Shown: one piece after another, positions 16,495 through 63,859 of the stretch
Layout: each line of letters opens with the position of its first letter
How positions within the stretch are numbered: position 1 is the stretch's first letter
Assembly (NCBI GenBank): GCA_965649825.1
Contig: OZ287707.1
Span: 488,292-552,291, forward strand
Source of the DNA: Penicillus capitatus
Taxonomy: Eukaryota > Plantae > Chlorophyta
Reading direction: 5' to 3'
DNA: 64,000 nucleotides
The notes under the pieces: generated by a model
Database searches by the model: none
Told to the model about the DNA's origin: nothing
Seen by the model: the letters and a program-made list of their open reading frames with translations, nothing else
Made by a program: the position numbers and the translations under genes

Positions 16495-19344
16495 ATGCAT
16501 TTTGCTAAGTTTCTCACGCTTTTGGCCGTTGCCTCGATCGTAGGCCCGTTCCTATCCGAGGCGCGAAGTGCGTGTTCCGACTTTTTGCGAATGCGACGGA
16601 TCATTTCCCGCCATTGCAGGCAGTACGAATAGCGACATATCGCATTATTGTAAGAGATCATTGCGAGACAACGACCGCGACGCAGCGCAGCTCTACTGCT
16701 CTGCAAGTAGAGAGGTTTCATTGGTATACGACTCGAGCACGGACGGAAAGGTAATCCATCTATCTCCCTATTCCTCCGACGACACGCATCGCCATTCTCC
16801 TGACGCGCATAACAAATGGCGATGACAACCGCATCCGCTCGCTTCGAATGTATAGGCGCGGGGAAGAACGACGACATACAGATACGGTGTGGCAAATGGC
16901 CGAGAGGCGTTTCGTGGATTTGCATCCCGACAGGACATTGTCGCCACCGGCATCCTCAACGCCGATGCCGACTCCGTTTGGCACGTCATTCGCGATCCGA
17001 GGTGCGATATCGGCATCACAATGTTACCGTTGTCCCACATAAAGCCATGGCAGAGTCGCTTTCTCTGTTGCGTTTCGTGAGTTTGCTTTTGAAGTGCGAC
17101 GAACTGGCCGCTCGATGACGCAGGTGGTGCTTAACAGCGGGGAGGAGCTTCTGTTCTCCCTTCTCCGCATAGACCACGTAAGACACAAACACCGAGAGTG
17201 ACTCCGGAAACGTCATGTCCTAGGCTCGCCGATACCAACAATACTCGATCTTCGGCCACACGAGAAAGATCTTCAACATCGATGATACCTATGTCAACAT
17301 CCGTGGCTCGCAGGTCTTTGTCACAGTGAAAGAAAAAACGGCAACGACGTGCGAGATCGAGATCGGCCTCTCGCTGGCCATCGATCGATCCTCCGAGCGA
17401 AACAGGATTCTATTCTTCTTCGAAGGATTTTTGACCCAGATGGTAAGGTCGATGTCTGATGCCTCGATGTCGGATTTCGGCCGGCGTAGATCGACCACTA
17501 TCGAATGGCTTTTGGAGCGGGCGATTGCACGACACAAGGTCACAGAGAGACAATCGGGATTTGCAACAACTTAGCCCATCCAACATTTGGCGCCGCTCGA
17601 ACTCCCCTCAGGCGTCTTTCGCGTAACGACCCTTCCTACATCGACGGCAAATCCACACCGGCTGACACGAATTTAAGCCCCCGACGTATCAGCAATATTC
17701 TTAGCGACCAAGGTATGAGATTGAGAGAGCGAGCACATCTCACGCACTCTATTGTATTCAGGCACGGACGCAGACGATGCTGAGAACTCGATGCATGTCA
17801 CGGATCTCTTCGTCTTTTTTGGTCAGTTTATCGACCACGATATCGGCATGACGCAAATGGGTTCTTCCTCCCTCGGTAAACAGCCTTTGTTCTCTTTCGG
17901 CCACGATAAATTCAGAGAAGAATTCGACATCCCTATCCCTCGTAACGATCCGGTCTTCCGCGGTCCTCACCGAAAAGACACCCTCGCATTCCAGCGCAGC
18001 ATCTACGTCAAAGTCGACGGTATGGATGTCGAACCGAGAACTCCGCCGAACAGCGCTACGGCCTACCTCGATCTGAGTCAAGCATGACCTTCTTTCTGAA
18101 CCACTCGGCAGTTCGTTGAGAATGTGTGAATTAGGTATACAGTGCGGATCGTGTCAGAGCAAAGGCACTGCGTGCTTACACCGGAGGTCGGATGAAAACG
18201 AGCGGCGGGTATCCGGGTTTCTTGCCGTTCAATGGCGACGGTCCAGGCGGCATCGGACTCAACATCGAAAACGCACCGGATGCCGATTCGAGATTCTACG
18301 TCGCCGGAGACAGCCGAGTGCAAGAGAACGCGTTAATTGCATCTCTCCATGCTTTATGGCTGCGCGAACACAACCACGTGAGCTTCGTCTCATCCCGACG
18401 CCTTTGTCGTCGATCTATCTCTTCAGGTCGCCGCTGAACTGGAAGCCGCGTTTGGCGACGCAGACCTGAACGTGTCGGATGAAGAGCTCTTTCAATACGC
18501 CCGCGATATCTGCGTGGCAGAGTATCAGAGTATCGTCTTCAACGAGTGGCTAACGATCCTTCTCGGAAAAGGCGTCGTCTCTGCTGAAGCCTACGCGTAT
18601 GATCCTGAGCTGTCGAGCAGTCTGGACGTCTTTTTCACCACGGCCTCCTTTCGCTTTGGGCATTCCATGGTCAACAATGTCCTGTGGTTGAAAAACAGCC
18701 GAGGATATGTGTCTAAGAGCAAACTGGAGCAGACCTTCTTCAATCCTTCCGGCGTCAACGCACAGACTTTTGCAGACTATCTGTTCGGTGCTGCAAGCCA
18801 TGAGGCACGGGAGATCGATACCAAAGTCGTCGACAGTCTCCGTTCCCAGCTCTTTAGTGGCGACGGCATTCCCACGCACGACCTCGTTTCGCTCAATATC
18901 CAGCGCGGCAGAGATCACGGTCTGCCATCCTACACCGCCGCGAGAGCGGCTTTTGGTCTACCTCCCCTCTATAGCTGTGACCAGATCAGCAGCTCAGAAG
19001 AGATCCGTAAGAAACTCCGAAAGGCATATTATAATGACATCTCCAAGGTGGATGCCTTTATCGGGGGCCTTGCCGAAGACAAACGAAGAGGAAGTCTTCT
19101 GGGCGATCTCTTTCATCGCAGCATATCCGATCAGTTTCGTCGTCTTAGGGATGGAGATCGCTTCTTCTATAAGAGCTCACCTTTTCCATCAGCTCTTTTT
19201 ACGCTCTATCCCCGACTCCATGACATCGCGAACGATCGTGTGACCTTGGCAGATATCCTGCATCGCAATACCGACATCACCGAGAAGGTGTTGGCTGCAT
19301 ATGGCGATGGTCCCCGTTCGCTATTTCAACTGAAGCATACGTAA
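16495..19344 (+). CDS. Secreted animal-type heme peroxidase (peroxidase-cyclooxygenase superfamily) with N-terminal SRPBCC/START-like domain; 801 aa from 9 exons
   Basis: Signal peptide MHFAKFLTLLAVASIVG. Distal FGQFIDHD, TAYLDLSQVYS, AGDSRVQEN, LWLREHN, proximal FRFGHS, LNIQRGRDHGL, DAFIGGLAE, QFRRLRDGDRFFY. All eight introns close in phase. Confidence 0.9.
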
Positions 19345-29920: not shown

Positions 29921-31882
29921 TTAAAAAGGAAATGCTAAAGACCAAGAGAAGACGTGGGCACGACAGGACTGCCACACTCTTGCATCGCATTGTCGAATTC
30001 GCTGCGGTTTTCTGAGCTCTGCAACGAGACTCAGCATAAAACCATCATCCAGAAATTCAAGATTGTTGAAAGCCCAAATGATATCACAAATGTCTTTGGA
30101 CGTGTAATTTGGCAATCGTTCTGGACGTCGCATTTCGGAAGCGAGTTTCCTCAAAACGTCTGCATCTCGCACACTGACGGTAGCCATTCCTAATACGATC
30201 GTTGAGAAATTATGCTCCATGTACTTCTTCAGTCGGTGGGATTGAACAGCTTCTTTCCCCAGCGTTCTGTAGAAGCTCTCGTCTTGAATGCCAATCAGCG
30301 CGGCACAGGAAATGATGTTTGCCAATTCCTGTACCTTGAATCTTCGCAGTCGCTCACTCTGAACGATTTCTTTCATCAACGCATCCAAGATAGGTGGATA
30401 GGCGAATTCCACGCGTGAGAAGCCGTACAGGATGTTGGCCAGATGTTGAGTTTCCATCTCTAACAGACGTCCCGTTTTCAGAAGGTAGTCTGACAGAGTG
30501 TAAAGCATTCCTTCGTCTTTGACCTGGTTCAGTCCAAATCCATAGATGATGTTCGAGATCTCCTGTCCGGTGAACTTCGTCAAGCGCTGGTAATTGGCAA
30601 TCTCTCGTGCCAGTGCTTGCAGAGCTGCGGGTTCTGGCGCTCTCAGCAATCCACATCCATAAACGATATTTGCTAGCTCCTGCTCCTTGAACCCCGACAG
30701 TCGATTGGTGACGGCAATCTGTTCGCATAGTGCGGTAACGAGTTCAGGTTGTGAGGGAAAGAGAATGGGCGGTGTCTCTTGAATATAGAGCTGAAAGAGA
30801 TCTACCAGACGCATACCCTTCTCCGCCGCAAAGACCAGTAATTGGAAACGGCTGAGGATACCAATAGAGTAGAGCATGATAGAGATGTCACAACCATCCA
30901 TCTGCATGACCAGGCGCTCTTGCAGTATTCGCTGCGACATCTTCTCCATAAAGTCTCGGTGGATATACCTCAATTTGCCGCATGAATAGAAGAGCCGCGC
31001 AAGTTGATTGCTTCGTGCCTCGGACAACAGAGGGATTCCTTTTCGTGCCAAAGAATCCAGGAATGTCTCTGGAGGTCGAGGAAAAATATTTCTCAGTGAG
31101 GTGAAAGCTGAAGCCACGTGACTAAAACGGACTTTGTCTCCCAAGCCGTCGAGAGCTTCTTTGAACTGTGGCCACTTGACAAAGTCGGAAAACTTGATGA
31201 AATCGTCTTTCTGTGGACGCAGCGATGCTGGATCGAACACATCATCGTCCTCCATCGACTCTTCCTGCGTCGTATTCAGCTCCATTATTGGTTCGTTGAT
31301 GTTCTCTTCTTCTACTCCCTCCTCTTCTGGTTTCTCCTCCTCTTCTACTCCCTCCTCTTCTACTCCCTCCTCTTCTACTCCCTCCTCTTCTGGTTTCTCC
31401 TCTTCTTGTACGACAGGCTGTTCTTCGATCGAGGAATGCATGTCGGATGCTGATTCTGCTGCGTTTGTCGTTTCTTCTGTCTCCTTTTCGGACACCTCTG
31501 TAGAGGCGTCTGCGTTGTCAGATGGTTCGGAACTTGTTTGCAGGTCATCTGCTGGACAGGGGACATCTGTCTCTGTCGTATCATTATCGCCTGTCGATAG
31601 CGATAGCCACCGACTCCACCCCTGGGCAGCGTTCCGCGGGAGATTGAACGGTGTCCCTAGTCGGGATCTGCCTTTCCGAGCTGTCTGACAAAGGAATGCG
31701 GTCGGTGTCGCTATGTGAGGGTTGAACGAAGTATGCAGTGCACCGTGGGAAGTTGGACATCTCGATGCGAAGCATCCTAAGCGAAAGAGGTCCGGGTGAT
31801 GACAGACACATGGATGCTGATAGAACGACGGACCACATCTCAGATCGCGCCACAGCGTTGCGACGCGTTGTGTTTGTCGCAT
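29921..31882 (-). CDS. Organelle-targeted helical-repeat RNA-binding protein (OPR/FASTK-like)
   Basis: Transit-like N-terminus and an acidic linker, then tandem 39-aa repeats of the form FKxQELANIxYGxGLL...L..LA.E....RL. The 3' end may extend to 29787 via an intron. Confidence 0.8.
   Translation of the reverse strand: MRQTQRVATLWRDLRCGPSFYQHPCVCHHPDLFRLGCFASRCPTSHGALHTSFNPHIATPTAFLCQTARKGRSRLGTPFNLPRNAAQGWSRWLSLSTGDNDTTETDVPCPADDLQTSSEPSDNADASTEVSEKETEETTNAAESASDMHSSIEEQPVVQEEEKPEEEGVEEEGVEEEGVEEEEKPEEEGVEEENINEPIMELNTTQEESMEDDDVFDPASLRPQKDDFIKFSDFVKWPQFKEALDGLGDKVRFSHVASAFTSLRNIFPRPPETFLDSLARKGIPLLSEARSNQLARLFYSCGKLRYIHRDFMEKMSQRILQERLVMQMDGCDISIMLYSIGILSRFQLLVFAAEKGMRLVDLFQLYIQETPPILFPSQPELVTALCEQIAVTNRLSGFKEQELANIVYGCGLLRAPEPAALQALAREIANYQRLTKFTGQEISNIIYGFGLNQVKDEGMLYTLSDYLLKTGRLLEMETQHLANILYGFSRVEFAYPPILDALMKEIVQSERLRRFKVQELANIISCAALIGIQDESFYRTLGKEAVQSHRLKKYMEHNFSTIVLGMATVSVRDADVLRKLASEMRRPERLPNYTSKDICDIIWAFNNLEFLDDGFMLSLVAELRKPQRIRQCDARVWQSCRAHVFSWSLAFPF
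31305..31406. repeat. Coding tandem repeat (15-nt unit) encoding EEEGV/EEEKP
   Basis: CTACTCCCTCCTCTT repeated on the + strand, plus a duplicated CTGGTTTCTCCTC block. Confidence 0.85.
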
Positions 31883-33488
31883 GTCGTCCGACGGACTCGA
31901 CTCGTAATGAATGATAATGACACCATGTGTTTTTTCTTCTGTGATCACGTTGCGTAGAATTGAATGACAACGAAGGTCAATTGACTTACTGTAACGCATT
32001 TGTTACAAGAGTATGGAGACTTGGAGATTATTGTAAACATGATGCAACGGAAACGAAGCGATAACAGAAACGGATTATTACAGAAAGCTCGAGAATTAAA
32101 AAGCGATCCATCCGTTCTTCTCTAACCCGCGTCTTCCGAAGATTGTGTCTGTGCTTTGCCTCTCTCCCCCTTGTCAATTCTTCTTCGTACAACGAGCCCG
32201 ACTGCGGCGTTTAGAACCGCGGCTCTCAGACTCGTCTTTTGTTTCCATGACCACGTCCCTATCTCCGCAGCGAGGTCCGGTACAAGCGGCCTCCCGCGGC
32301 AAAGTCCGATTCGATGTTTGACAAGAACTTAATGAAGCCACAACCCGTTCGTTTTTTCCGAATCGCTTACTCCTCAGTGTTCGCTAAATAAAGACCTCAA
32401 GAGCATCACAGACACTGCAATCTGAAAGCACGCAAGTCTGTTGCCGTTTGCGACGACCAAAGCGTGACGGAGAGCATGTGCAAAATTGCGTTACTTACAA
32501 ATGGGTCTCTCCCCACCTTCGGTCGGGCGAAAAACTTCCGCTCCATCGGTTAAGCGTTCCGGTGACAATTGTCGGCTGATATATAGAACGGTAATGCACC
32601 GTGCTCGCAACGCGGCCGGATAGTCAGCGTAATGGATACTGTTTGTTTTATCAATGTAAAATTGACAGTTGGACGTTACTTACTGCCTCTTCCACGTGCA
32701 CGAAGAACACTTATGCTTTGCTTTGTCTATCGGTTCTTCGTTCGAATCGTGAAAAACATGGTTCGTCAAAATATCGGCTGCTTGAAAAATGTCAAGGGAC
32801 AGCTGTTAGCTTCGCTGTCGTACTATCTGGACAACTGTCCACTTTCGGGTCACACCAACGTCTGGATACTTAAACGCGTCCCCTGTATGGAACTCTGTCT
32901 CGTTTGTAATCCAATCTGTTCCTTAAAGCTCAGAAACTGAATTGGAAAGAGATTTTTGAACACAACTGGTTCTCATTTGCCAAATTTCTTGAATCCATCT
33001 GTGTTGGTTGGATTCGTGCACCCTGAAAAAACGAAGTTCGCATGGAAACCGAATACTGTATCGCTCCGGGCTGATTTGTTATTCAAAAGCCCGTGTAAAT
33101 CCCACAAACTTCTCTCTCTCGTTCGTAGTCCATCTCTGTGTTTGTGGCATCCTACCTCCACGACATCTCTTGCTGATGAAGCTTGAAACCCTGTTGTTTG
33201 TCGGTTCGGTATATTGGTCGATGTAGATGAATGAATCCTTGTTTCCTTTAGCAGTATTCGTCTATTTCATCCTTCCTGGCATCGTACTATGGCACGTATG
33301 TGAATTGTTACTGATGTTTCAAAGATAGTGCTCAGACGAGTTCTAACCATTTCAGGGTTTTTTTTTTTGCAATGGCCTCCTTGGAAGCACTTTGCTCAAC
33401 ATTCGGTTAACCTAGTCTTTCACGGACTCTTGGGTTCAAACCCGAATTTCGGAAATCTCCTTGGTCATGTGTACATGTGATCGATGCG

Positions 33489-44512: not shown

Positions 44513-46354
44513 CTATTTATCCTTCTTAGACTCGTCTTTTGCATCATGCAGTTTTGGTGGTTCGATTTCTTCAACTTGTGCCGGTTCTCGTCGATGACGC
44601 AGCGTGGGCGTGGATGGTCCCTCTTCTGTTTGCTCCTCTGGCGGCTCTGTCTCTTCAGCTTCCGTTTCTGAACATGGACCATCATCAGCCGGAGCTGCTG
44701 GCGCTGCAGATGATTCTTCACTGAAGCCAAATTCATTGACGCGTTTCTTGTCCACTCCATAGACATACCACTGATAGAGGTAGATCAAGAACACAACATC
44801 GTCTCTGAAGACAGACAGTCGATGCAGCCATGGCATGGTAATCACAAAGGCAAAGAGATCATCAATGATCGTATTGAGAAACTTGTACGTTAACTGTCTC
44901 CACGGCAGATGCGCCACACTCTTGAGCTTGTAGTTCAAGTACAGCTGAGGACACATCAGAATGAAACCAAAGGCATACACAGCTCCGACCAGTGAACTCA
45001 GAATCCAGGAATACCAGCTCTTATGCGATTCATTGACCAAAGCGTATATGGAATATCCGATGACGAGTGGATAGATGACGTATGAGAGGTACTTCATTGC
45101 CTGGGCATCGTGCTTCTTGGTCTCGGAGTTACTGTAGGAAGCCCGATCTTCAAAATGCGGCACAGGTATACCGTTCCTCCACTGCACCGTCACTTTCATC
45201 GCTTTCGTGATTTTCCAGATTTCGATCAGTAGACCCACTCCAGAGCTGAGCAGTACGACGAAACTGGTATCGTTGTCCATCAGATAGAGAAAGATCACAA
45301 ACTGACAGGCAGCGTTGATCAGGATGGAACGAGCGGAGAGACCTTCCATTGATCGATTGTCTTTCCAGAAGCCGATGTCATTCTTAAACGCCAAGAAATC
45401 AAAGAAAGAATGCAAAAGCGACACGACAAATGTGATGCCCAACAGAATCGGATTGCCTTCCACCAAGATCTTTTTGAATTCATCTGTCTCGTCGTCTGTG
45501 TTCAGTCCCATAGAGGCCTGGAGTCTGAACGACTCCTCCACTTGGCTAATGATCTGGACGAGCCACGGTTTGATCGAACTCACTGTCAATTCAATCGTCA
45601 CTTCGTCTACCGTACTGTTCACTTCGATCATGTGACTCTTGAGGACCCAGAATTCATTGAAATAGATCATGGGATAGTAGTAATCGTCCTCGGGATCGAC
45701 CAGGAAGAGAGGACGGAGATGTGGCGGAACGGTGCTCTGTTTGTACTGGGAGAAATCGTCCACCAATGCCACCGTCATTTTCGGTTTCCAATAATTCACT
45801 ATCTCTCTTGGCGCTTCCTCCTCTTCCTCTTCCTCTTTGTCCTCCTCTGATTGAGCCTCATCAAAGAGAAGATTCTTTTCTTTTGTTTCGCGGCGTTTTG
45901 GACCGTAGTGTGTGAGTCTGGTCACACCGAAGAAGGCATTGTGTTGTTCGAACTCGTGCCCTTCTCGCATAACGAAGGTATGGAGATAGAGGCTTCCATT
46001 ATTCTGAGCGCTTTCTGGCAGCTGGAACGTCACATTCTTGGAAACGGCGTCATCAATAACCAAGTGCACGCTTTCAAGGTCCCAAATAGGATCTTTTTTC
46101 AGTAATGCCTCCTTGATGACGGGAGAGGGGTCTATGTAAAAGGAGATATCGACGGGCTCGCCTCGTTGAAAGAGATTGCGCAACACGGGTTGGTCCGCGC
46201 TTTTGCGTCCACCTCCTTTGAGATAATTCATGAGCCACCAAACGAAGACCATTCGGGCAATAGTGCCGATGAGACCGCCTCCTGGACGTGGGGCAGCTTG
46301 TTCCGGAGCCGGAGCCGCCCCTCCTCCAGGTGCGGCAGCTTGTTGTTGCATCAT
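44513..46354 (-). CDS. CLPTM1: CLPTM1-family membrane protein (lipid scramblase-like), intronless
   Basis: FDFLAFKNDIGFW, FILMCPQLYLNYKLKSVAHLPWRQLTYKFLNTIIDDLFAFVI, FRDDVVFLIYLYQW, RVNEFG. Confidence 0.95.
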   Translation of the reverse strand: MMQQQAAAPGGGAAPAPEQAAPRPGGGLIGTIARMVFVWWLMNYLKGGGRKSADQPVLRNLFQRGEPVDISFYIDPSPVIKEALLKKDPIWDLESVHLVIDDAVSKNVTFQLPESAQNNGSLYLHTFVMREGHEFEQHNAFFGVTRLTHYGPKRRETKEKNLLFDEAQSEEDKEEEEEEEAPREIVNYWKPKMTVALVDDFSQYKQSTVPPHLRPLFLVDPEDDYYYPMIYFNEFWVLKSHMIEVNSTVDEVTIELTVSSIKPWLVQIISQVEESFRLQASMGLNTDDETDEFKKILVEGNPILLGITFVVSLLHSFFDFLAFKNDIGFWKDNRSMEGLSARSILINAACQFVIFLYLMDNDTSFVVLLSSGVGLLIEIWKITKAMKVTVQWRNGIPVPHFEDRASYSNSETKKHDAQAMKYLSYVIYPLVIGYSIYALVNESHKSWYSWILSSLVGAVYAFGFILMCPQLYLNYKLKSVAHLPWRQLTYKFLNTIIDDLFAFVITMPWLHRLSVFRDDVVFLIYLYQWYVYGVDKKRVNEFGFSEESSAAPAAPADDGPCSETEAEETEPPEEQTEEGPSTPTLRHRREPAQVEEIEPPKLHDAKDESKKDK

Positions 46355-46416
46355 CGAACGTACCAACACGAAAACGTGACACCGTTGTCGTCATTTCAGT
46401 TGCACCATTTCATGCA

Positions 46417-48221: not shown

Positions 48222-51200
48222 ATGTCCTCGAATTGGTTTCGTGCAGCTGAGCAGTGGCTGAGAGGGAATGTCGAGGTGGAGACACTTGTGGTGGAAGCTG
48301 CACTCGAAGGACAGCTGACAGAACTCGAACAATACTTTCGCCAACATTCTCCATCGACAGGGTTCGTCCTGTGATGTCCTGCAACACGGATGCATGTTCT
48401 GTCCATGCAGACCACATCCTATAACCCTAGGTGCCCTGGAGCGTTATGCTTGTCAGTGTGCCTACGATTTGCTCGATAAGCCACAGATCGATCGCGGCAT
48501 CTATGTTCTGCGAAACGTCTGTGGAGAAGACGTCATGCATCAATGGCTGAGAGATGCTGTCATGTCATCAGTCGATGCTCCTCTGCGTCGTCGAGTGACG
48601 GAGTACTTAAGAAAACACGCATTGATGAATGAAGACGATGCGACGACTCTTAGGAACTTAAGTAGGTACCATTGCTGAAATGTGTGAGAGTGTGAGATTG
48701 CAGTGCTTCCATAGATCATGTGGAGAGAGTGTACACTGTCGAATCTTATGCCCTTGCTTTTGAAGGAATGCGATCTTCTGCGCTGTCGACATTCGTTTCC
48801 AGTACCTATAATCAATTAGAGACATCACTGAATTCTTTCTTCCCTCGTCGTCGAGGAGGAGCGATAAAATTAGTGGATGATGTGAAAGGCATGTCGCTCC
48901 TGCCCGATTCTGCCAACGTCTGGGCACAAGTCTCGGAAGACCGAGCATGGAAAAAGAGAGCGAATGAACAGATAGCATCCCCAGCAGAAAAACGACAGGG
49001 ATCCATCTCGCTCTTTTTCAGAGGAGCTATCGAATGGTTTGCGGACATGGATGATGTGGACTGGCAGCGGATCGTGGTCGAAGGGGATCTCCTGTCACGT
49101 CATCTGAACAAAGCTGGATCCATTCCACAAGCAGCTGACGAATCTGGCGTCAGATGGACGGCAGAGTTACAGTATTACGTGTCACACTTTATGATGAAGG
49201 AGGCTCTACAGAAGCTCAATCAGATTCCCCCATCGTCTGTTGTGTCGGCCACCATCTCTGTTCGGCAGAGTCACATCGAACTGCTGCGTTTCGAAGCACG
49301 GACACTGAACTGTGATCTTGACCCATTCTGTAACCACGCTTCTCGCAGAGTCCTCGCAGAGAAGCTTCTGGTCATGGGAATCTGGTTTCAGACCCATTGG
49401 GAGCGCGTAGAAGAGTGGATCGGCTTTTTGGCTCGATCCGGCGCACTGTTTGGAACGGAACCCGTACACGAAGACGTGAAAGCCCTGCTGCAGAGTGGAC
49501 GCGTTGTAGCAGTACTTCTGGAGTTTTGCATACGACATGCGTTGCCAGCGACGCTCCAACATTTTCTGGAAGGCAATGCCATACCAACAGATATCGAGAG
49601 AACAAGAGTGATGCTAAACATTGCTCGAACGTGCGACTGGGCACAGTGGTTGATTCTTTCCCGCATTCCAGATCAGATCTTTGCTTCGACCATTGCCAAT
49701 GCGCGTTATGTCTTGGCGACAGAGCAGATTTCGGTTAAGACATTTGCCGACCTGGCTCAGGCAGATTCCATTTATGTGATCTTGACAGCATTGGCACATT
49801 CTCCAAAACCTCTGAGTCAGACACTGCTCATGGAGCGTCCTGTATTGACAGAGAGTCCCAGTCAGCGGGAGGAGTTGCAGGTTGAGAACGGCAAGCTCTG
49901 TCTGGTCGATCCCACCTGCTGCCTTGCAGATATCGAACCTCAGCTTCAAGAGAGTTACCCCGAGACATGTCGAGCATTGAGGATCATTGCCTGCCAGGAG
50001 AAAGAACGTGGGCATTTGACATTCTCTGATTTCTGCACATGGCGCAACCGTATGCTGAGAACAGAGTTAGGAGAGATCGGGTTCCTAGACATGGTCATGA
50101 CGTCTGGCATCCGAGAGATCGAAAAGCTGCTCAAGATGAGCCAGTCGACCACGGACATTGCAGCAGATCCAGGTCAGAGTGAGAGCGCTCAGTTTTGGGA
50201 AGAGAGACAGCTTCGCATGCTGCAACAGTATGTACAGAAGCTCTGTCATCGGGATGTTCCTGAAGGGATCAGCATCGGCATCTGTCATCATCTCATATGC
50301 GGGCGACCTATGGCGGCGCTGGAGTGGTTCCTTGCTTCCAAGCCGACTTCGGCATCTCCTGTTCTTACGGATGAGGAACTGCGATTTCTGGAGTTCCTGA
50401 CACGCATTACTGCTCTATGGTTTTTCAAAGATGCTGTCGTTGTCTTTGCCACCTTGGTTTTCGCGGCAGCCTGTGGAATAGACACCAATAAAATCAGAAT
50501 CGATGTTGCTGCGTTACAGCGGCTGGATCATGCGCAAGGCAGTTCCATGGACATTACAGATTTGACGGAGGATCTGGCCATCGAAGTTGCCATGGAATAC
50601 GATGCAAATCTAAACTGCCGGGTGCAATACAGATCACAATTTCGACGAGGACACGTTTTCTTTAGGTAGCAGGCCATGCTTCTTCGAAGATTCTCGGATG
50701 TCTAGAGAATGTCCTGTTGAATACTTTCTCGGTGAAGCCATTGATGTCCAGTAGTACTGTCGTGGAGATCGGTATGCCTTCAGTTCTGTCGGAATCGACC
50801 GATGCTGTGATCAAGTGGTCCATCGTCCATGCATTTGCCAAGCTGCATCATCAGATTCCTACAAAACGCCTCCTCGAAAGACTGGCTCAAGCCGACGACT
50901 GGATCCTCTTTCTCACAGAAGCCAATTTCTTTCAGTCCTCCATTAACGAGGTTCTTATCTCCCTCCCTTCTATTCACGTACAGGATCTGTGAACCAGGTC
51001 ATTAATATTGCGAAAGCACATTTCGCCGATCCGCATCTGGGGCATCACGTTTCGTTCATCTTAGAAGGAAGACATATCATTCAAGAGCATCCAGCTGTAC
51101 CTGTATCGCGTTCGCTTTCGGGCGGCTGGGAGAGCAAACTCTCTCACGATGTGACGATGCCGAGTGCTCCTGTCTCTGAGGAGCTGTTTGATCTTCTGCT

Positions 51201-54200
51201 AGAGGTCAAGAAGACAGAGAATCCAATTCAGGTCGAAAGTCGTCCATTGCACGCGTTGACGTTATCCCTTGTGCACAGGTTCTGCTTCTCTGGGCACGTC
51301 GTTTGAAGTGGAGACTTCTCTGTGTCATTGCTGGTTGTCACTCTTATCTTTCGTACCTGGACTGTCTTGTTGCATGGCTGGATATTGGCATCTCCTGCAG
51401 AAGAGATGGCTTCCAGGCTTCTCCTTCACCATCGCCTCAAGCGGGCGCCTGGGCAACCACGCCATCGAAGGAAGAGATTTCTGAACAGTTGATGCACCTG
51501 GTCTATCATCTATGCTCCCAACAGCTGTTTGATGAACTTCTGAACGGTTTATCCCTCTTTCCCGTGGTGCCATTACTGCCGATGAAGCATTTTATGGCGG
51601 CGCTTAAGTACTATTGCAGACACATGTTTCGCGCAACGAGAGAACATCTGACGCAATTTGAAGACACGCTCGACAAAGAGATCAAGCGATCTGAAACGCT
51701 CAGGGAATCCATTTCTACATCCACATCATCCAACGTCGGAATGCTACTGGCCTCTTCTCTGGATCTCGATCTCCTGGAGAAGACAACACAGTCAGCTATC
51801 ATGGCCCTTCTGCGGAGCTTCTCAACATCCTTCGAAAGGGAAAGACTGCTGGATTTGCTCATCCGATTAGAAATTGATGATGATCTGTTATGGATAGGTC
51901 ACCTTCGTATGTTACGGCGAACGTACGAACTCCTTGGAGCAGAGGCAGACACCTGTATTAACTGGCAGTCTCCAGTTCGATGTTTTGATCTCCCATCCGT
52001 GGATACCGATTTCGTCCTGAAGCGTCTCACAGAGGACGGCAACTGGACAGCTGCTCGAAAATGGGCACAGGAGAATGATATACCCTCTGAGGAGCTGACA
52101 AGACGTCAGGCAGAAGCTCTGGTACAGGAATGGGAAGATTTTGGCTTTGAAGAGGACATGTTAGAGATTCTGTGGGATCAGATCAACAACATCTTCGTCG
52201 ATCAATCCTATCCTTACTTCAAAGCAGGACTCTTCTTTCTACAGCAGGCAACACAGGCAGATCCAGACAGAATGAAGCGCCTTCTGTTGGAGGCAATGCA
52301 TTGGGTCGATGGTTCGAAGACGCACCACGGTTCAGAACTGGCACCGCATTTGGTGGAGGAGCTGCGAAAAGCGCTTTACCTTATGGACAGCGAAGGAGAC
52401 CTCATACATCGTCTTCCCAACAAAGCAAGACGCCTGTACTGCCGGCAGTTACTCATGGATCCTTCAGGTGTCCATCGCTGTCACATCACGCAACGAGAAG
52501 TGCCCAGCTGTTCAGATGGTGCTGCGATCTGCGCCTGAGATTGTGATCGCTGCAGACGGCAGTGAGATATCCAAATCGAGCGAAGTCTCGTCACAGTCAT
52601 CACCCAGTCTCGATCAAAGTATTGCAAAGCCTCTGCCACGAATGGACATGCCCACTGTATCAGACGAGGAACGCCAATGTATGCACCGAACAGCGACACT
52701 GACAGATCGCTCAAGTGAAGTAATTGCTGTTTAGGTCTGGAGATTCTCGAAAAGATCGTCCCGCATGCAACGGAGGATCAAGTACAGAGAGCCATTAAAC
52801 TGCTTTTGGATAGCGGTCAGATCGAGGCGGCGAAGAGTATACAGCAGAGTGAGAATCTGGCAGCACAGATCGAGTTTTTTCTGGTGGATACAGCTCTTTC
52901 CATCGTCCATCGTTGCGGAACAAATGGTCAGCCGTTGTCTTTCTTCCCTCTCTCTATCCACGGACACTGTGTGCAGGATGGAACAGTGAATCAGCTGATA
53001 GAATTGTATTAGCTCCAATACTGAAATTCTTGAAGAAAAAAGAACACTTGGATTCCGAAACAGAACCAAAACCGCAGGACGTTTTAGACGCAGTTGTCCG
53101 GGCTTGCAAGGAATGTGGAGGATATCCTGTCTGTGCCCGCGCTGCTGCAGCATTTCGAGCAGCAACACTACTCAACATGTCATGCGTCGAGCTGGCTAAC
53201 TGTGGTCCCAACAAAGTACTGAGACGACCAAATGTTTCATGTGTGAGAAGAGTGAGATGTAGGCATTGGAATTGCTGCTGCTCAAAGGGCAGAATGCATC
53301 CGAGGTGGTCCATGAATTTGTCTCTGCCTTTGAGTTCACCCCACGAGCAACGGCCAAGAAATTGGCCCAGATGTATCTAAAGAGCCTCACAGGGATGAGG
53401 ACAATCAGCAGTATCAACGAAAACGAACCGGTGGAAGACTACTCCAATCCTTTCAAAGACAGGTACTGCCTGTCACATCATCCAGTCAGCGCCTCGACAG
53501 CAACTGTCGTGCTTGCCTTAGTAGTGATCTGGTTCGCAATTCGATGATCTGTTCCGACGGTGTGGAAATTGGCAATGCTTTGATGCAGCTTCTGGTCGAG
53601 CGTCACTGCTCTTTGCCTTCCGAAGTGGAGGCAGATATCCTTGTCCAAACATACCATTGTTACGAGCAAGTGGGCTACGTTGAGGGACTGGATGTCCTGT
53701 TGGAATTGGCAACCTCTCGAATTCATGACTTTGCATTGCACGAGAAGTACGAAGCGCTTGTTAAGGTGTCTGTCGGCATCTGCCGATTCGATGGACTGTC
53801 GTATGCGCTGGACATCATTGTCAAGAACCGAAAGCTGGATCTTCTCTTTCAAGATGCTGACAGTCACAGCCCCGTCACCATTTCGACACTCAGATGTGCC
53901 ATTCTCAGTTCGATCTATAAGCACTCTCCAAGAGACAGCGAAGCATTGTCTATCACGCATCGGCATTTCAACATGCATGTCGAAGTCGGTCAAGGACTCA
54001 AAGATAGAGCAGAGGAGCTTCTGAAGCATTACACATTGGCTGGACGCCTCTCCAGAGATCGAAGACTCATCGATGCCATGGATCTGCTGATCCGGGCAGG
54101 TGCTGAGTTCTCATGTGCCCAGTGCAGTTCCTCTGCGACCGAATGTGGGGCACTCGTGGCATTGGTGGCTCAGCAGATCTGTTACGGAGATCGCAAATGG

Positions 54201-54723
54201 GTCTGTCTCAAAGATGCCGAATGTCGAGATCTGTTGCCACAGCTCTCAGATGTTCATTCCGCTCTGATCGTGGCGCGAGCCTACAAATTCAACACACCAC
54301 AAGACTGGGTTCTCACTCTTTGGCAGCGTATGCTGTATGTTGCCACAGAGCACGATAAACAGAGACACTCGCATTCATCTCTGAAACGCGCCTTACAGAA
54401 TATGTCACTCTATTGTGAGGGCATCATGAGAGAGATTGTTTTCTCAGAGGAGCACTTGGAGCAAGTGAAAAGACGTGTCCGTTACTCTATCCACCAAGAG
54501 CACGGTGTTCTGTCTGTAGATCATGCACATGTACCTTGCTTTTCCTGCAAATGAAGCTTGTTTTCAGCCACAGGTCAGTTATGAGGTATTGACAGAGTGT
54601 GTCCTTCAGTTGCTCCACAGCGTGGCCGATGTTCGCTTGCGCTGGACGCTTTGCAGTATGATGGGAGGCGAAGCGGCTCAGTTGTTGATTCGGGACTGCC
54701 GCACGATTCTTGATATGGAATAA
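48222..54723 (+). CDS. SPG11: Spatacsin (AP-5 accessory protein SPG11)
   Basis: Long helical multi-exon ORFs. WAQWLILSR, WSIVHAFAKLHH, DDWILFLTEA, NWTAARKWA, EVEADILVQTYHCY, and a Spatacsin_C-like C-terminal region. Start codon inferred. Confidence 0.85.
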
Positions 54724-56765: not shown

Positions 56766-57842
56766 TGTCTCCTTCTCTCTCTGCAACCAACGACGCTTGC
56801 GCCAGTTATCGCCTGTCGACGCTGCGCAATGGCATCCGGCCCTAAGACCGGCACTCTCAGCAGTTGCCACCTCTCGGCTGTGTCCTGTACACATTTGAGG
56901 TCAGTGTGGTACGTTCGTTCGTATTCGTAACGTACTATCCGAAGGGTCCACGACGGAACGGGCGTCGTCCAGAGCTCTATGCAAAGGATAGCGACTGCGA
57001 TGCATGGAATAGATCGCATGGGATCCTCCTTTATATCGCGGTGTTTGCGACGGGTTGAAGGCGTGTGTTCGTTCGCTGTTCAACATCTAACGGCGACAAC
57101 GTTGTCTACGTCACACACACGCGATGACGTCAGAGCACAAAAACAATAATGGTACTCGCAGTAGGCACCGGAAAAGTGCATCGACGCGGGTCGGTCTATC
57201 CAAGTGATCTGCGACATCACCTGGCGACGCATTGACAGCTATGAGACGCAACGGCGAAAGCGCGACGCCTCCGACGCGTCACATACGCGATGGAACCCGC
57301 AGAAACGCAAATGTGCTGCTGACGCAGGGCGACGGTTTCGACCGCGTACCGTGTCCGAATAGGAGAAAGCATCTGCAGAAAGGTGCGGGACGAAACGGAT
57401 GCGCGCGTGAGACCGTCGCCGTCGACCCGAGGAGCATTTGAGGCAAAACGACGTTCGATCGTTCCCAGCCAACCGACGCACAGTAGAAATCGTGTCGCCT
57501 GAAATGATGTGAAGGACACCAAGAACAGAGGGACGGGTCGGCTGCAAAAAATGAGGCACGGACGAACGCACAAACAAAGGCAAGGCGACAGTGGTGGCGA
57601 AAGTTGGGAAGCATGCGTTGAACAGAAGACACGGAGGAGAATCGTGACGTCAGCTGCGGACGTACTTTGACAGCGTGGTTGCGTTTTCGGTGACTCTGCG
57701 CGTATCGAATCGAGAAAATACTGCGGATTCGGTTTCCGACGGAATACGGTTTTCAAAAGCGCTCGGCCAATGAAAGACGTCACGTCATATGCGCGCAGAA
57801 TGTGATGGGACAGGCGAAGACCACTGACATGACCGAGAGAAA

Positions 57843-60104: not shown

Positions 60105-62214
60105 TTAAGAGGTATAATAGATGATGGGTTTGTGTACTTTTGCTGCAATCTTGTCCATCGAGGGCGTCAGTCCATCACACGTATGGGTCATTTCGCGCTG
60201 ATAGTCACCCAAAGAGAAGAAATTTCGTTGACTGCGTTGGGTGTGAACGACAAAGACTCGACGTTCTGTGCTACGACGAATATCGTCGGATCCACTGAGG
60301 GGAGTGCTTCGTCCGATGAGATGGACAATCGCAGGGGGAGCATCTTCGCGGAGGTACGTCTTCTTTCGCTGTTGTCTCCAGATCTGTAATCCTATTCGAT
60401 CTCGGAACCCACCGTCGCAGAACGGACTGGATGCATTGCCCGGAACGGTCACGGGAGCAAACATTAGTGGGATGGCGGCGGATGCGGCGACCGCTTCTGG
60501 CAAAGGACCAGAATCGAGAATCTCATGTTCGCCCTTGGCATTGACCACGCCCACGGCAAACGGCTTCTCCAGGGCTTCGAACGTCGCAGGGAGGACATCT
60601 CTTAGACGATCAACCACACCATCCAGTAGAAAGAATCCCTTCCAGAAACAGAGGTTCGGTCTCACAATCTGAATGGGAGGTGTTTTGCAAAGCTCATGCG
60701 CCACTTCTGCTGGACGGTAACCGGCACAGTAGAGACTTCCACTGAGAGCGCCTGAACTCGTCCCCATGACACCCATCACATCCAGACTCGCCTGCACACA
60801 ACAGAACCCTCATGGCACATATTCACAACACAATGATGATCTCTCGGTCGTTTCTCGCAGAAAAAGCATTGCATATGCGTGGTCAATAGGTCCACCCAAC
60901 ATACTACTGATGTTTTTACACAACCGTCGGCATTGAAGGAAGATCGTCATATCAGGCACGTGGCCATAGGATCCAGGCAGAAGTTGTTTTTTGGTATCTT
61001 CTGTACAGAGCGACTCTTGCTGGTTCCCAGTTCCTTAACATGCGTTCTTCTGTCATTCTCTTTGTTTCGATCAAAATAATCGTATTGAAAAGTGGACCCA
61101 CAAATGTCCAGCCATCCCCGTGAGGCAACGAAAACAGACATAGACTCCACCAGAACAGCTGTTCGCCGAAGTAATTGGGATGTCGACAGAATCTCCACAG
61201 ACCCGTATTCAGAATCGCTGGTTTATTCGGACCAGATGTCATGTATCGGTACAGGTCGTTATCAGCCGAGAAAACGATGGCAATTCCAATAATACACAGC
61301 ACGAAGGCGACAGAATCGATGACAGACGCATCTGACGACGGATGGTAGAGAACGGAATAGACAGGCAGTGTGAGACCGGTCAGCATGATCTGCTGCAACA
61401 CGCCTACCATCCAAAAGGACATCCACCACCAGTGCTTTCCATACTTCCTAGCCAGAAGAGTATACCGCCAATCTTCACGTTCACCAAATTTCCACCCCTC
61501 TCTTCGAAAGTAGGTATGCAGCATACGGCATCCCCAGATCAGCAACAGAGTGATAACACAGGCAAAGCGACGAGAAGCGAGAGGTAGGGGGACGAGGATG
61601 GAGGCGTGTCTCGTGTAGGCGTAAGTAATCATGAGTGGGATCAGCACCCAGAAAGGATCGATGAGCCAGAAGCTGCGCTGACACAGTCCAATGAGCCAAA
61701 ACAACAGAGACACCCCAAAGAACTGAAGCAGTGACACCGAGGCGACAGGATTCTCACAGATCTTTGCCAGAAAGGCATCCGATGCTGTGCAGTGGCCGAG
61801 AAAAACGTCGACGGCGAAAATCCAGACGACGAGGACGAAGATAACGAGTGTCGCATTCAGGAGGTTCTTCGCCGAAAGATGTGCATGGGGACGATGCGCT
61901 CCCCAAGATGCCATGAGTGGCGCAGAAAAAATGTATGTTCGTGCGTTTTTTTGCAGCTTACCTCATCCACCGCTTGCAGAAATCCTGCATGTTTAGCAAA
62001 TGCCATAAACCCACTTGACAGCACCAAATCCACGCCCTCTGGTTCTTGCCCTTCACAGAGGACGCAGAGATGACGTCCTATGAGAGCATAACATTTTACC
62101 AGCCGCCTTCCCCCTGTGATCTGCACGACTGTCCACTGATCGTGTCCTCGAAGCCATCGGCGATGCGGCATGCCCCGAGAGAGGCCGCTGATTCCATGGA
62201 CGGACACGCATCAT
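60105..62214 (-). CDS. Patatin-like phospholipase, 296 aa; exons 62214-62100, 62050-61962, 60791-60105
   Basis: Exon 2 encodes DLVLSSGFMAFAKHAGFLQAVDE. Exon 3 encodes the nucleophile motif GTSSG and DGG. Exon lengths 115+89+687 nt close in phase. Confidence 0.9.
60916..60920 (-). promoter_or_regulatory. Candidate chlorophyte polyadenylation signal TGTAA for the nested DUF1295 mRNA
   Basis: TGTAA lies 31 nt after the DUF1295 stop, inside the host intron and upstream of its acceptor at 60792. Confidence 0.55.
60952..61914 (-). CDS. DUF1295-family membrane protein (steroid 5-alpha-reductase/ICMT-like superfamily), intronless, nested in patatin intron 2
   Basis: WLIDPFW, WGCRM, EDWRY, ADNDL, GLWRFCRHPNYFGEQLFWW, Y..Y...TSAWILW. 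Complete 320-aa ORF. Confidence 0.93.
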   Translation of the reverse strand: MASWGAHRPHAHLSAKNLLNATLVIFVLVVWIFAVDVFLGHCTASDAFLAKICENPVASVSLLQFFGVSLLFWLIGLCQRSFWLIDPFWVLIPLMITYAYTRHASILVPLPLASRRFACVITLLLIWGCRMLHTYFRREGWKFGEREDWRYTLLARKYGKHWWWMSFWMVGVLQQIMLTGLTLPVYSVLYHPSSDASVIDSVAFVLCIIGIAIVFSADNDLYRYMTSGPNKPAILNTGLWRFCRHPNYFGEQLFWWSLCLFSLPHGDGWTFVGPLFNTIILIETKRMTEERMLRNWEPARVALYRRYQKTTSAWILWPRA

Positions 62215-62289
62215 GGGATCGGACAGAAGGAGGACTGTCAGCAGACGATGGCAAGATGTTCGCAAGATTCCGAAATTCTCATGTTCGTC

Positions 62290-63859
62290 ATGTTGCTTGA
62301 TGTCTCGATTCTGCGGCTACTCGGTAAAGATGATTTTCGCGTCCTGCGCGCCGTCGAACTCGGAATGCGCAATGTAAGCGGATTGTACGTTTGGTTGCCC
62401 ATAGTGATGTGGTGAGTGTAGCACGAGATCGTTCCGGTGCCCCTGATCGTGCAGGTGGCCCGTCTGAGACAGACTCTCTCCCTACGCTCCATTCGCGAAC
62501 TGTTGAAGCACAAGCTGCTGCATCACGAGAATGTCCAATACGACGGATATCGCTTAACGACAGCTGGATATGATTTTCTGGCCATTCACACTTTGGTCTG
62601 TCGCGGGAAGATTTATGGTTTTGGTCGTCGGATAGGAACGGGAAAAGAATCGGATATCTACGAAGTGCACAACGAAGCGCATTTCCAGAGAGGTGAAGCG
62701 ACATTGGATATGCAGGTGACAAATGAAGAGGGGGAAGTTATGGTCATGAAACTGCATCGACTGGGGCGCATTTCTTTTCGCGCCGTCAAGAATAAACGGG
62801 ATTACCTGCGCCATCGCAAGAATTTCAATTGGCTTTATCTGTCTCGACTAGCCGCTCTCGGAGAATACGCCTTCATGACGGCGCTCTCCAAAAGAGGCTT
62901 CCCCACTCCAACACCTATCGATCAGAACAGGTACGTGCTCTCATGCCTGAAATCCATCTTCGCCATAAGAAGCACCTTTAGGCATGTCGTGTTAATGTCG
63001 GTGGCAAAGGGCTATCCCTTGTCTCAGATAAGGACGATGGGACATCCAGATATGGTGTTCGAGAAGATCATGCATTGGTTTGCTAAGTTTGTGGAAGTTG
63101 GTCTGGTGCATTGCGATTTCAACGAGTTCAATATCATGATCGATGAGGACGAGGAGATCACGATTATTGATTTCCCTCAAATGGTATCGGTATTCCACGA
63201 CAATGCCGAGGAGCTGTTCAACAGGGACAGACAATGCATCATCACGTCTGCACGATGATACAGTTGGACGCCGAACACGTTTCTGTCTGTTCTTAGTTTT
63301 TTCAAGAGGCGGTTTCATTTCGATCCAGATCGGGATGCACCTGAGGAAGCTGTTTGTCCTGAGTTCCGTTCCTTGATGGAGAGATACGGCGAGTTAGCGT
63401 CGTCGCAAGATGTGGACAGTCCGCTAGATCAGGAACTCCATGCGTCGGGTTTTAAGCGATCGCACAGAGAGGCGCTCGCGAAGCATGCTCAGGGAGACGA
63501 TCTTGATGAAGTTTCTTTTTCGGAAACGGCCTCGATCGATTCCGCATCGACAGACGCTGAGAAATCCGATGGGTACATCGCCTTGATATTTCTCTTGGCA
63601 AACGGATCGCATGTGTGAACAGAGAATACAGAGATAGCGAAAGAACAACGGAAGAGACGCTTCAGCCGATGACTTCTCTTTCAGGCAGCACCAAAAAAGT
63701 GCGTCTCTCTTCTTTTAGAACTGCCCCATGTGTCAGGCTTAGGATGTGGCCCAAAGAGTGACGCTCGAGCAGAGAAGAATGATGGCAAAGAGCATCAAAC
63801 ATCGTCGTTCCAGGAATAACAAGGACAAAAGACACAGCAAGCATTCGATAACGATGTAG
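62290..63859 (+). CDS. RIO2: RIO2 atypical protein kinase (40S biogenesis)
   Basis: DDFRVLRAVELGMRN, YDGYRLTTAGYDFLA, IGTGKESDIY, KLHRLGRISFRAVKNKRDY, VHCDFNEFN, IIDFPQMVS, and a basic C-terminal tail. Confidence 0.95.

Follow-up and report, generated by a model that had tools for sequence, protein, structure and literature searches.

How does a complete gene come to lie inside an intron of another gene on the same strand, and how would the inner gene be expressed? We address these questions for a locus in a 64,000-nucleotide (nt) stretch of the green alga Penicillus capitatus (GenBank assembly GCA_965649825.1, contig OZ287707.1, positions 488,292 to 552,291), termed the window below; coordinates are those of the window unless another locus is named. 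Its minus strand carries in order a short open reading frame (ORF) piece, an intact ORF of 320 amino acids (aa) and an ORF piece of 228 aa. The outer two pieces can be joined into one gene for a patatin-like phospholipase (the lipase), while the intact ORF encodes a protein of the DUF1295 family and falls within an intron of that lipase. Comparison with related sequences indicates that the locus is a genuine, long-standing pair of host and nested gene in the Bryopsidales, on the Caulerpa side of the order.

The lipase is read from three exons, 296 aa in full (Table 1). Taken alone, the ORF that contains its last exon (60105-60797, minus strand) matches the Pfam Patatin profile over positions 30-186 of 191 only, with 53.3 bits. 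Upstream, the first ORF piece terminates in ...GVDLVLSSGFMAFAKHAGFLQAVDE/GTAAGC at 61962 (a slash marks the splice site), the peptide DLVLSSGFMAFAKHAGFLQAVDE being encoded at 62030-61962 up to this GAG/GTAAGC donor; the downstream piece opens after the acceptor TGTGCAG/GCG at 60792/60791. Joining 61962 to 60791 is a phase-0 splice over an intron of 1,170 nt, and the joined product matches profile positions 1-186 with 72.6 bits. Aligned with 11 homologues, the joined product has its junction inside a highly conserved block free of gaps, where the window reads DLVLSSGFMAFAKHAGFLQAVDE/ASLDVMGVMGTSSGAL and the homologue consensus is DLVLSSGFLAFAxHxGFLxAVEEAxLxVxGVMGTSAGAL. Residues 6-60 of PlpD (PDB 5FQU), a patatin of solved structure, likewise align with this stretch without gaps.

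Members of the patatin family (PF01734) are recognised by a GxSxG nucleophile elbow, a catalytic aspartate in D-G-[GA] and an N-terminal oxyanion-hole segment. All three are found in the joined lipase, the glycine-rich motif being of the subfamily variant SSGF: in place of the canonical GGGxRG, the oxyanion motif is SSGFMAF throughout this algal and bacterial subfamily. The GTSSG and CDGG motifs of exon 3 are invariant across the homologue alignment. Because the oxyanion hole is encoded in exon 2 and the Ser-Asp dyad in exon 3, an active lipase needs the 1,170-nt intron removed. In profile span (1-186), GTSSG and DGG the protein resembles both the RssA/PlpD-type patatins (5FQU) and its green-algal orthologues (Chlamydomonas CHLRE_10g417750v5, Caulerpa g804.t1); its named relatives are green algae only.

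Within this intron the nested gene is complete. Its product matches the Pfam profile PF06966 (DUF1295) at 7e-47 and 160.3 bits (cut-off 20.4) over the whole profile (1-235 of 235), and its coding sequence fills 963 of the 1,170 nt, or 82% of the intron, on the strand of its host and with the ATG only 47 nt beyond the donor. A first-pass annotation of the window, made from its letters alone, had described this arrangement: an upstream exon joined to the lipase over 1,170 nt, with a whole single-exon DUF1295 gene nested in the gap on the same strand. Its coordinates are all correct, including the exons, the intron, the 320-aa ORF and the distances of 47 nt from donor to ATG and 31 nt from the DUF1295 stop to a TGTAA. 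So is the overlapping upstream frame that it pointed out, the patatin frame running into the intron as far as a stop at 61857, 58 nt beyond the DUF1295 ATG.

We also considered a fusion isoform in which patatin exon 2 would be joined to DUF1295, and rejected it: the DUF1295 frame meets a TGA close to the end of exon 2, within its final codons, and out-of-frame joins made through the first AG after the donor reach stops in the window as well as in L003.

Table 1. Features of the nested locus and measured introns of neighbouring genes
Feature	Coordinates	Strand	Length	Description
Patatin exon 1	62100..62214	-		Starts ATGATG at 62214; encodes MMRVRPWNQRPLSGHAASPMASRTRSVDSRADHRGKAA plus one base
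Patatin intron 1	62051..62099	-	49 nt	GTAAAA...GAAG
Patatin exon 2	61962..62050	-		Encodes (G)QEPEGVDLVLSSGFMAFAKHAGFLQAVDE, the N-terminal oxyanion-hole segment; ends GAG/GTAAGC
Patatin intron 2	60792..61961	-	1,170 nt	Phase 0, GT...AG
Conserved leader element	61923..61951	-	29 nt	A/C-rich, in the 47-nt leader from donor to DUF1295 ATG: AAAAAACGCACGAACATACATTTTTTCTG
DUF1295 gene	60952..61914	-	320 aa	Single exon; predicted polytopic membrane protein, ICMT / steroid-reductase superfamily
Trailer	60792..60951	-	160 nt	DUF1295 stop to patatin acceptor; TGTAA at 60920-60916, 31 nt past the stop
Patatin exon 3	60105..60791	-	228 aa + stop	GTSSG nucleophile elbow, catalytic DGG aspartate
RIO2 intron 1	62374-62421		48 nt	Fixed by a conserved protein motif
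RlmN-like radical-SAM gene introns (n = 3)			54, 50, 46 nt	Fixed by conserved protein motifs

The nest recurs in related sequences, as the first-pass annotation had suggested might be looked for. Those that we compared are two contigs of ERZ26696514 (L002, ctg303635, 520 kb; L004, ctg303824, 2.2 Mb), Logan SRR33785045 (L003), SRR20820735 (L006) and ERZ27276715 (L008). Patatin exon 2, DUF1295 and patatin exon 3 follow one another on one strand, flanked by RIO2 and a radical-SAM gene, in the window, L002/L004 and L003; L006 and L008 are seen from DUF1295 through the acceptor into exon 3. The nest is thus found in five lineages, and an assembly artefact is rejected since four further assemblies, each independent, show the layout. 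The proteins of L002/L004 are ~90% identical to those of the window, and those of L003 56%.

At a dS of 0.35-0.41 against L002/L004, DUF1295 has a ratio of nonsynonymous to synonymous divergence (dN/dS) of 0.16-0.17, and patatin exon 3 one of 0.10. Divergence from L003 has saturated the synonymous sites, but 24 of the 28 exon-2 residues are unchanged there, and the GTAAG donor and the acceptor are both retained. The tblastn identities of exon 2 are 97% (29/30 aa) in L002/L004, 86% (24/28) in L003 and 87.5% (21/24) in Ostreobium. The DUF1295 and patatin ORFs are intact in every lineage where they are seen. This purifying selection, with retention across saturated divergence, leads us to regard both genes as functional and the arrangement as old. 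No transcript of the nest clade, spliced or unspliced, was present in public protein and contig collections, and a metagenome scan gave a best relative of at most 46% identity.

Placement of the locus within the green algae comes from the neighbouring CLPTM1 gene (44513-46390, minus strand), whose product is 71% identical to Caulerpa lentillifera g867.t1 and 51% identical to the proteins of Ostreobium and Bryopsis. In a neighbour-joining tree of CLPTM1 proteins, those of the window and L003 form, with several Logan and ENA proteins, a group sister to Caulerpa; Bryopsis and Ostreobium fall outside in 100 of 100 bootstraps. One of the assemblies, ERZ26696514, carries the whole locus twice (L002 and L004), with coding sequences 99.3-99.6% identical and the L002 copy ~10 kb from its contig end; the pair could reflect separate haplotypes or strains, or else a large duplication of recent date.

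The first patatin exon is of a different character from the second. Its frame and its phase-1 join hold good in the window as well as in L002 and L003. Intron 1 measures 49, 50 and 51 nt in these three, changes that are not multiples of 3, and only its removal restores the patatin reading frame. The nucleotide identity of exon 1 to L002 is 80%, the same as for non-coding DNA; abundant R, S and A together with low conservation mark its product as a probable targeting peptide. Intron 1 is 90% identical to L002, against 80% for exon 1 and 80-83% for other non-coding DNA, in a small sample; it may carry a signal.

Conservation is also seen in the leader between the donor and the DUF1295 ATG. Even against L003, with its saturated dS, an ungapped match of the 29-nt element agrees at 22 of 29 positions, and its local alignment score of 15 (6.1 +/- 1.2 in shuffles) was reached in 0 of 5,000 shuffles. 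Over its full 47 nt the leader shares 93% identity with that of L002; the intron-2 trailer, the patatin 3' flank and the RIO2-patatin spacer stand at 80-83%. The window has no second copy of the element, which contains no ATG, and the RNA around donor and leader showed no stable structure (z-score -1.66, unremarkable). These properties suggest the element as the best candidate for a DUF1295 start site or 5' untranslated region, or for a control of the adjacent donor. The sole other near match in the window to the leader motif is ACGAACGCACAAACA at 57558-57576 (plus strand), with one mismatch to ACGCACGNACANACA, beside the 3' end of the radical-SAM gene.

Space is short on all sides of the nested gene. 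The RIO2 kinase gene (plus strand, ATG 62290) and the patatin gene (minus strand, ATG 62214) stand head to head, their start codons 75 nt apart in the window (62214-62292) and 65 nt apart in L003 (L003 5629-5714); this is either an extremely compact bidirectional promoter or a case of overlapping 5' ends. At the other end, the trailer is 82% identical to that of L002, the level of the non-coding background, and its length in relatives is ~76 nt in L008, ~60 nt in L006 and 28 nt in L003, where stop and acceptor are separated by TAGatctttgaaataaaacggtttctttcag/ only. The five other introns of the window that are fixed by conserved protein motifs measure 46-54 nt, in agreement with the ~50 nt given in the first-pass annotation, and intron 2 is a ~23-fold length outlier against them. 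No known RNA family was found in the intron; the sole match was a sub-threshold one to ALIL at 62306-62380 (16 bits, gathering score 50), in the RIO2 5' region and outside the intron.

How, then, might DUF1295 be made? It is rather probable, on the features of the sequence, that it comes from an independent nested transcript, and we hold the explanation as a whole, that of an old nested pair with DUF1295 made from its own transcript, with moderate confidence. That transcript would most likely have a short leader, with its start site at or just upstream of the 29-nt element, either in the last part of patatin exon 2 or no more than 40-50 nt into the intron. The promoter would then overlap the patatin 5' exons, and one embedded there fits the tight promoter space given by the RIO2 and patatin start codons. 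For the 3' end there are two candidate places, the short trailer and, on the example of L003, patatin exon 3 or the sequence past it: the 28-nt trailer of L003 leaves almost no room for an intronic 3' end, so that the DUF1295 mRNA there probably ends in or beyond exon 3. Polymerases from the patatin promoter would transcribe the whole nested gene, which splicing would then remove for the lipase mRNA, and because host transcription passes through the nested gene some interference between the two is to be expected. Reading from the patatin ATG to the DUF1295 ATG there are eight ATGs in the window, six in L002 and three in L003; this load, the overlapping patatin frame and the ATG-free conserved leader are the reasons why a start site of its own is favoured. 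Several points weigh against this explanation. The exon 2-exon 3 splice is predicted from homology and conservation, and the contigs of L006 and L008 begin within DUF1295, so that exon 2 is outside their view. As an outlier among introns of 46-54 nt, an intron of 1,170 nt might be removed with low efficiency. The 29-nt element could equally be read as an intronic splicing element, and a DUF1295 start site within ~50-85 nt of the ATG is one that we infer. The competing account has a single promoter upstream of exon 1, the spliced transcript giving the lipase and intron retention or intronic polyadenylation giving DUF1295 by leaky scanning or reinitiation, outputs that would exclude each other on any one transcript. 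It draws on the same compactness, since a promoter for DUF1295 alone would have little space with the ATG only 40-47 nt from the donor, and the RIO2-patatin 5' region is so short; a conserved leader adjoining the donor could be the element of decision, upstream ATGs in L003 number only three, and leaky-scanned bicistronic mRNAs occur in other green algae (PMC11291117). Those mRNAs likewise have two same-strand ORFs, here possibly on one primary transcript, and a weak-context upstream start. Their ORFs, however, lie in tandem on the mature mRNA, with few or no AUGs ahead of ORF2 other than the weak start of ORF1, whereas here ORF2 lies in an intron of ORF1 with 3-8 AUGs ahead of it and the ORF1 frame overlaps its start (by 58 nt, or 26 nt in L003). 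One upstream AUG, when restored in the algal system, was enough to bring ORF2 output down to background, and the design rules given for it remove upstream AUGs; the cases known are from Chlorophyceae and Trebouxiophyceae, not Bryopsidales (PMC11291117). With the upstream AUGs and the overlapping frame a shared transcript would be a poor mRNA for DUF1295, and the leaky scanning on an intron-retained transcript that the first-pass annotation had envisaged is unlikely. Its intronic poly(A) signal fares no better: of 33 long ORFs of the window, 3 have a TGTAA in the next 200 nt, against ~10% expected by chance; the motif is absent from the trailers of L003, L006 and L008 and from the 400 nt after the patatin stop, and the L003 trailer has almost no space for such a site. 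We therefore rate the shared transcript as unlikely. A stricter form, a conserved single-promoter unit in which the 29-nt element decides for each transcript between removal of the intron (lipase) and its retention or early termination (DUF1295), seems more doubtful still; if it is true, siphonous green algae would long have carried a built-in switch that yields one or the other of two lipid-modifying enzymes.

The origin of the nest can be approached from the intron itself. A phase-0 intron follows AVE[ED] at the identical position in the lipase orthologues of Chlamydomonas reinhardtii (L009, ~190 nt) and Ostreobium quekettii (L007, CAJHUC010000484.1, 905 nt). Neither contains DUF1295, a search of the Ostreobium intron for a remnant giving nothing at E < 1e-3, and no patatin orthologue outside the nest clade has a gene in this intron. 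As position and phase are the same in these algae without a nested gene, the DUF1295 gene entered a pre-existing, old intron. The nested copies come out as a single clade in a neighbour-joining tree built from DUF1295 proteins; the sister of that clade (L005, 53% identity) is encoded by an intronless gene that stands alone behind an unrelated gene, with no patatin exon upstream. In Bryopsis (L010), where DUF1295 is again a stand-alone, intronless gene, a single 11.4-Mb contig carries both genes, their locus tags (BSKO_01148 and BSKO_01372) differing by 224. The first-pass annotation had taken the lack of introns to fit a retrocopy, that is, a processed copy made from a DUF1295 parent with introns and inserted here. 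The single exon speaks for this, as does the record in Drosophila, where 28.7% of nested genes lie on the host strand and 72.5% of those are single-exon; the pattern there is explained by selection against mis-splicing (PMC3814207). A further feature in its favour is a perfect direct repeat of 10 nt (TTTTTCTGCG, as read on the minus strand), which brackets the nested gene: one copy lies in the leader, 7 nt before the ATG (61921-61930), the other 87 nt past the stop (60856-60865), with a chance expectation of ~0.007 for a 47-nt against a 160-nt segment. However, introns are missing as well from the nearest stand-alone relatives, and their loss is thereby uncoupled from the insertion; ORFs in this genome run uninterrupted for as many as 694 codons; and no A-tract or poly(A) remnant was found after the gene. 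The repeat could be a chance similarity of pyrimidine tracts or a trace of insertion, and is weak evidence for retroposition because it is pyrimidine-rich, has one mismatch in the trailer copy of L002 and lacks a counterpart in L003; a target-site duplication, moreover, would not survive saturated divergence. A retroposed origin in this sense is improbable. Far less credible is that the locus is a relic, either with dead upstream patatin exons and a truncated lipase or with DUF1295 as an unexpressed remnant. The long intron might splice poorly among introns of ~50 nt, but dN/dS of 0.10-0.17 for both genes, the upkeep of exon 2, donor and acceptor across saturated divergence, and a DUF1295 ORF intact in every lineage seen all speak against decay. 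Taken on its sequence features, then, the locus would be classed by the tests applied neither as a leaky-scanned bicistronic mRNA nor as a TGTAA-driven polyadenylation switch, and it is not clearly recognisable as a retrogene.

An ancient functional linkage of the two enzymes was looked for and not found. None of 46 distant DUF1295 loci (JGI metagenomes) had patatin exons nearby, and the bacterial patatin homologue P0098 had no DUF1295 neighbour at five places. On the sequences compared, nesting is confined to one clade, with no wider linkage.

As to what the nested enzyme does, its AlphaFold model (predicted local distance difference test score 91.4) is that of a polytopic helical membrane protein. 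The nearest folds in the PDB are ICMT (5V7P), SRD5A2 (7BW1) and a steroid 5-alpha-reductase (7C83), all of them weak matches (E 0.03-0.5, template modelling scores 0.34-0.52), and a profile search also touches a delta14-sterol reductase (4QUV), weakly, at E = 0.0055. DUF1295 proteins, among them those like S. pombe C594.04c, are placed in the ICMT-PEMT-steroid 5-alpha-reductase-sterol-reductase superfamily, and the nested protein likewise matches their Pfam profile in full length. The protein is thus placed in a superfamily of membrane-embedded lipid reductases and methyltransferases; with structural matches this weak, its chemistry may be that of a reductase or a methyltransferase, and its substrate is probably a lipid. 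A literature search retrieved no biochemical characterisation of a DUF1295 family protein. To speak of two lipid-modifying enzymes is reasonable for the lipase, and for DUF1295 plausible but unproven.

Elsewhere the window holds, among others, ORFs at 18382-19344 (plus), 53334-54554 (plus), 29921-32002 (minus) and 48696-50669 (plus). Domains found among such ORFs include an animal-haem-peroxidase (1.6e-71) and a Spatacsin C-terminal domain (4e-45), the latter also syntenic in L002 and L006, and several ORFs of 560-694 codons are without any Pfam match.

Same-strand pairs of an including and a nested gene have been catalogued in Drosophila and mammals (PMC3814207, PMC11694760, PMC3192792), and the patatin/DUF1295 pair, by its predicted structure, fits this known class: there too a complete, single-exon gene lies in one same-strand intron of a host that is transcribed through it and splices it out. 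Unlike those pairs, it sits in a compact genome with introns of ~50 nt, the nested gene taking up most of its intron. The 47 nt from donor to ATG and the 28-160 nt from stop to acceptor leave almost no room for separate regulatory DNA, and the pair has been kept across lineages with saturated synonymous divergence. What is unusual in it is this extreme compactness, its deep persistence in the Bryopsidales and the conserved leader element. Our literature search found no report of such a same-strand nested pair in siphonous green algae.

Such pairs bear on genome annotation. To our knowledge, standard eukaryotic gene predictors miss same-strand nested genes, and prokaryotic gene callers, with which these metagenome contigs were annotated, break the lipase apart; the window is also contained in an 894-kb contig of ENA metagenome assembly ERZ25074695, whose annotation comes from such a caller alone. 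For Ostreobium, the patatin model in GenBank (234 aa, P0017; L007 7045-7116, 8001-9439) starts inside the intron and lacks the exon for VDLVLSSGFLAFAKHAGFLQAVED, which is found 905 nt upstream with a proper GT donor; as a conserved upstream exon is omitted, this public gene model is N-terminally truncated. The Caulerpa annotation may likewise hide a nested DUF1295. For the biology of these algae, the pair would be useful for learning how a spliceosome tuned to introns of ~50 nt copes with one of 1.2 kb, and how two overlapping genes on one strand keep apart their transcription starts, their termination and their splicing.

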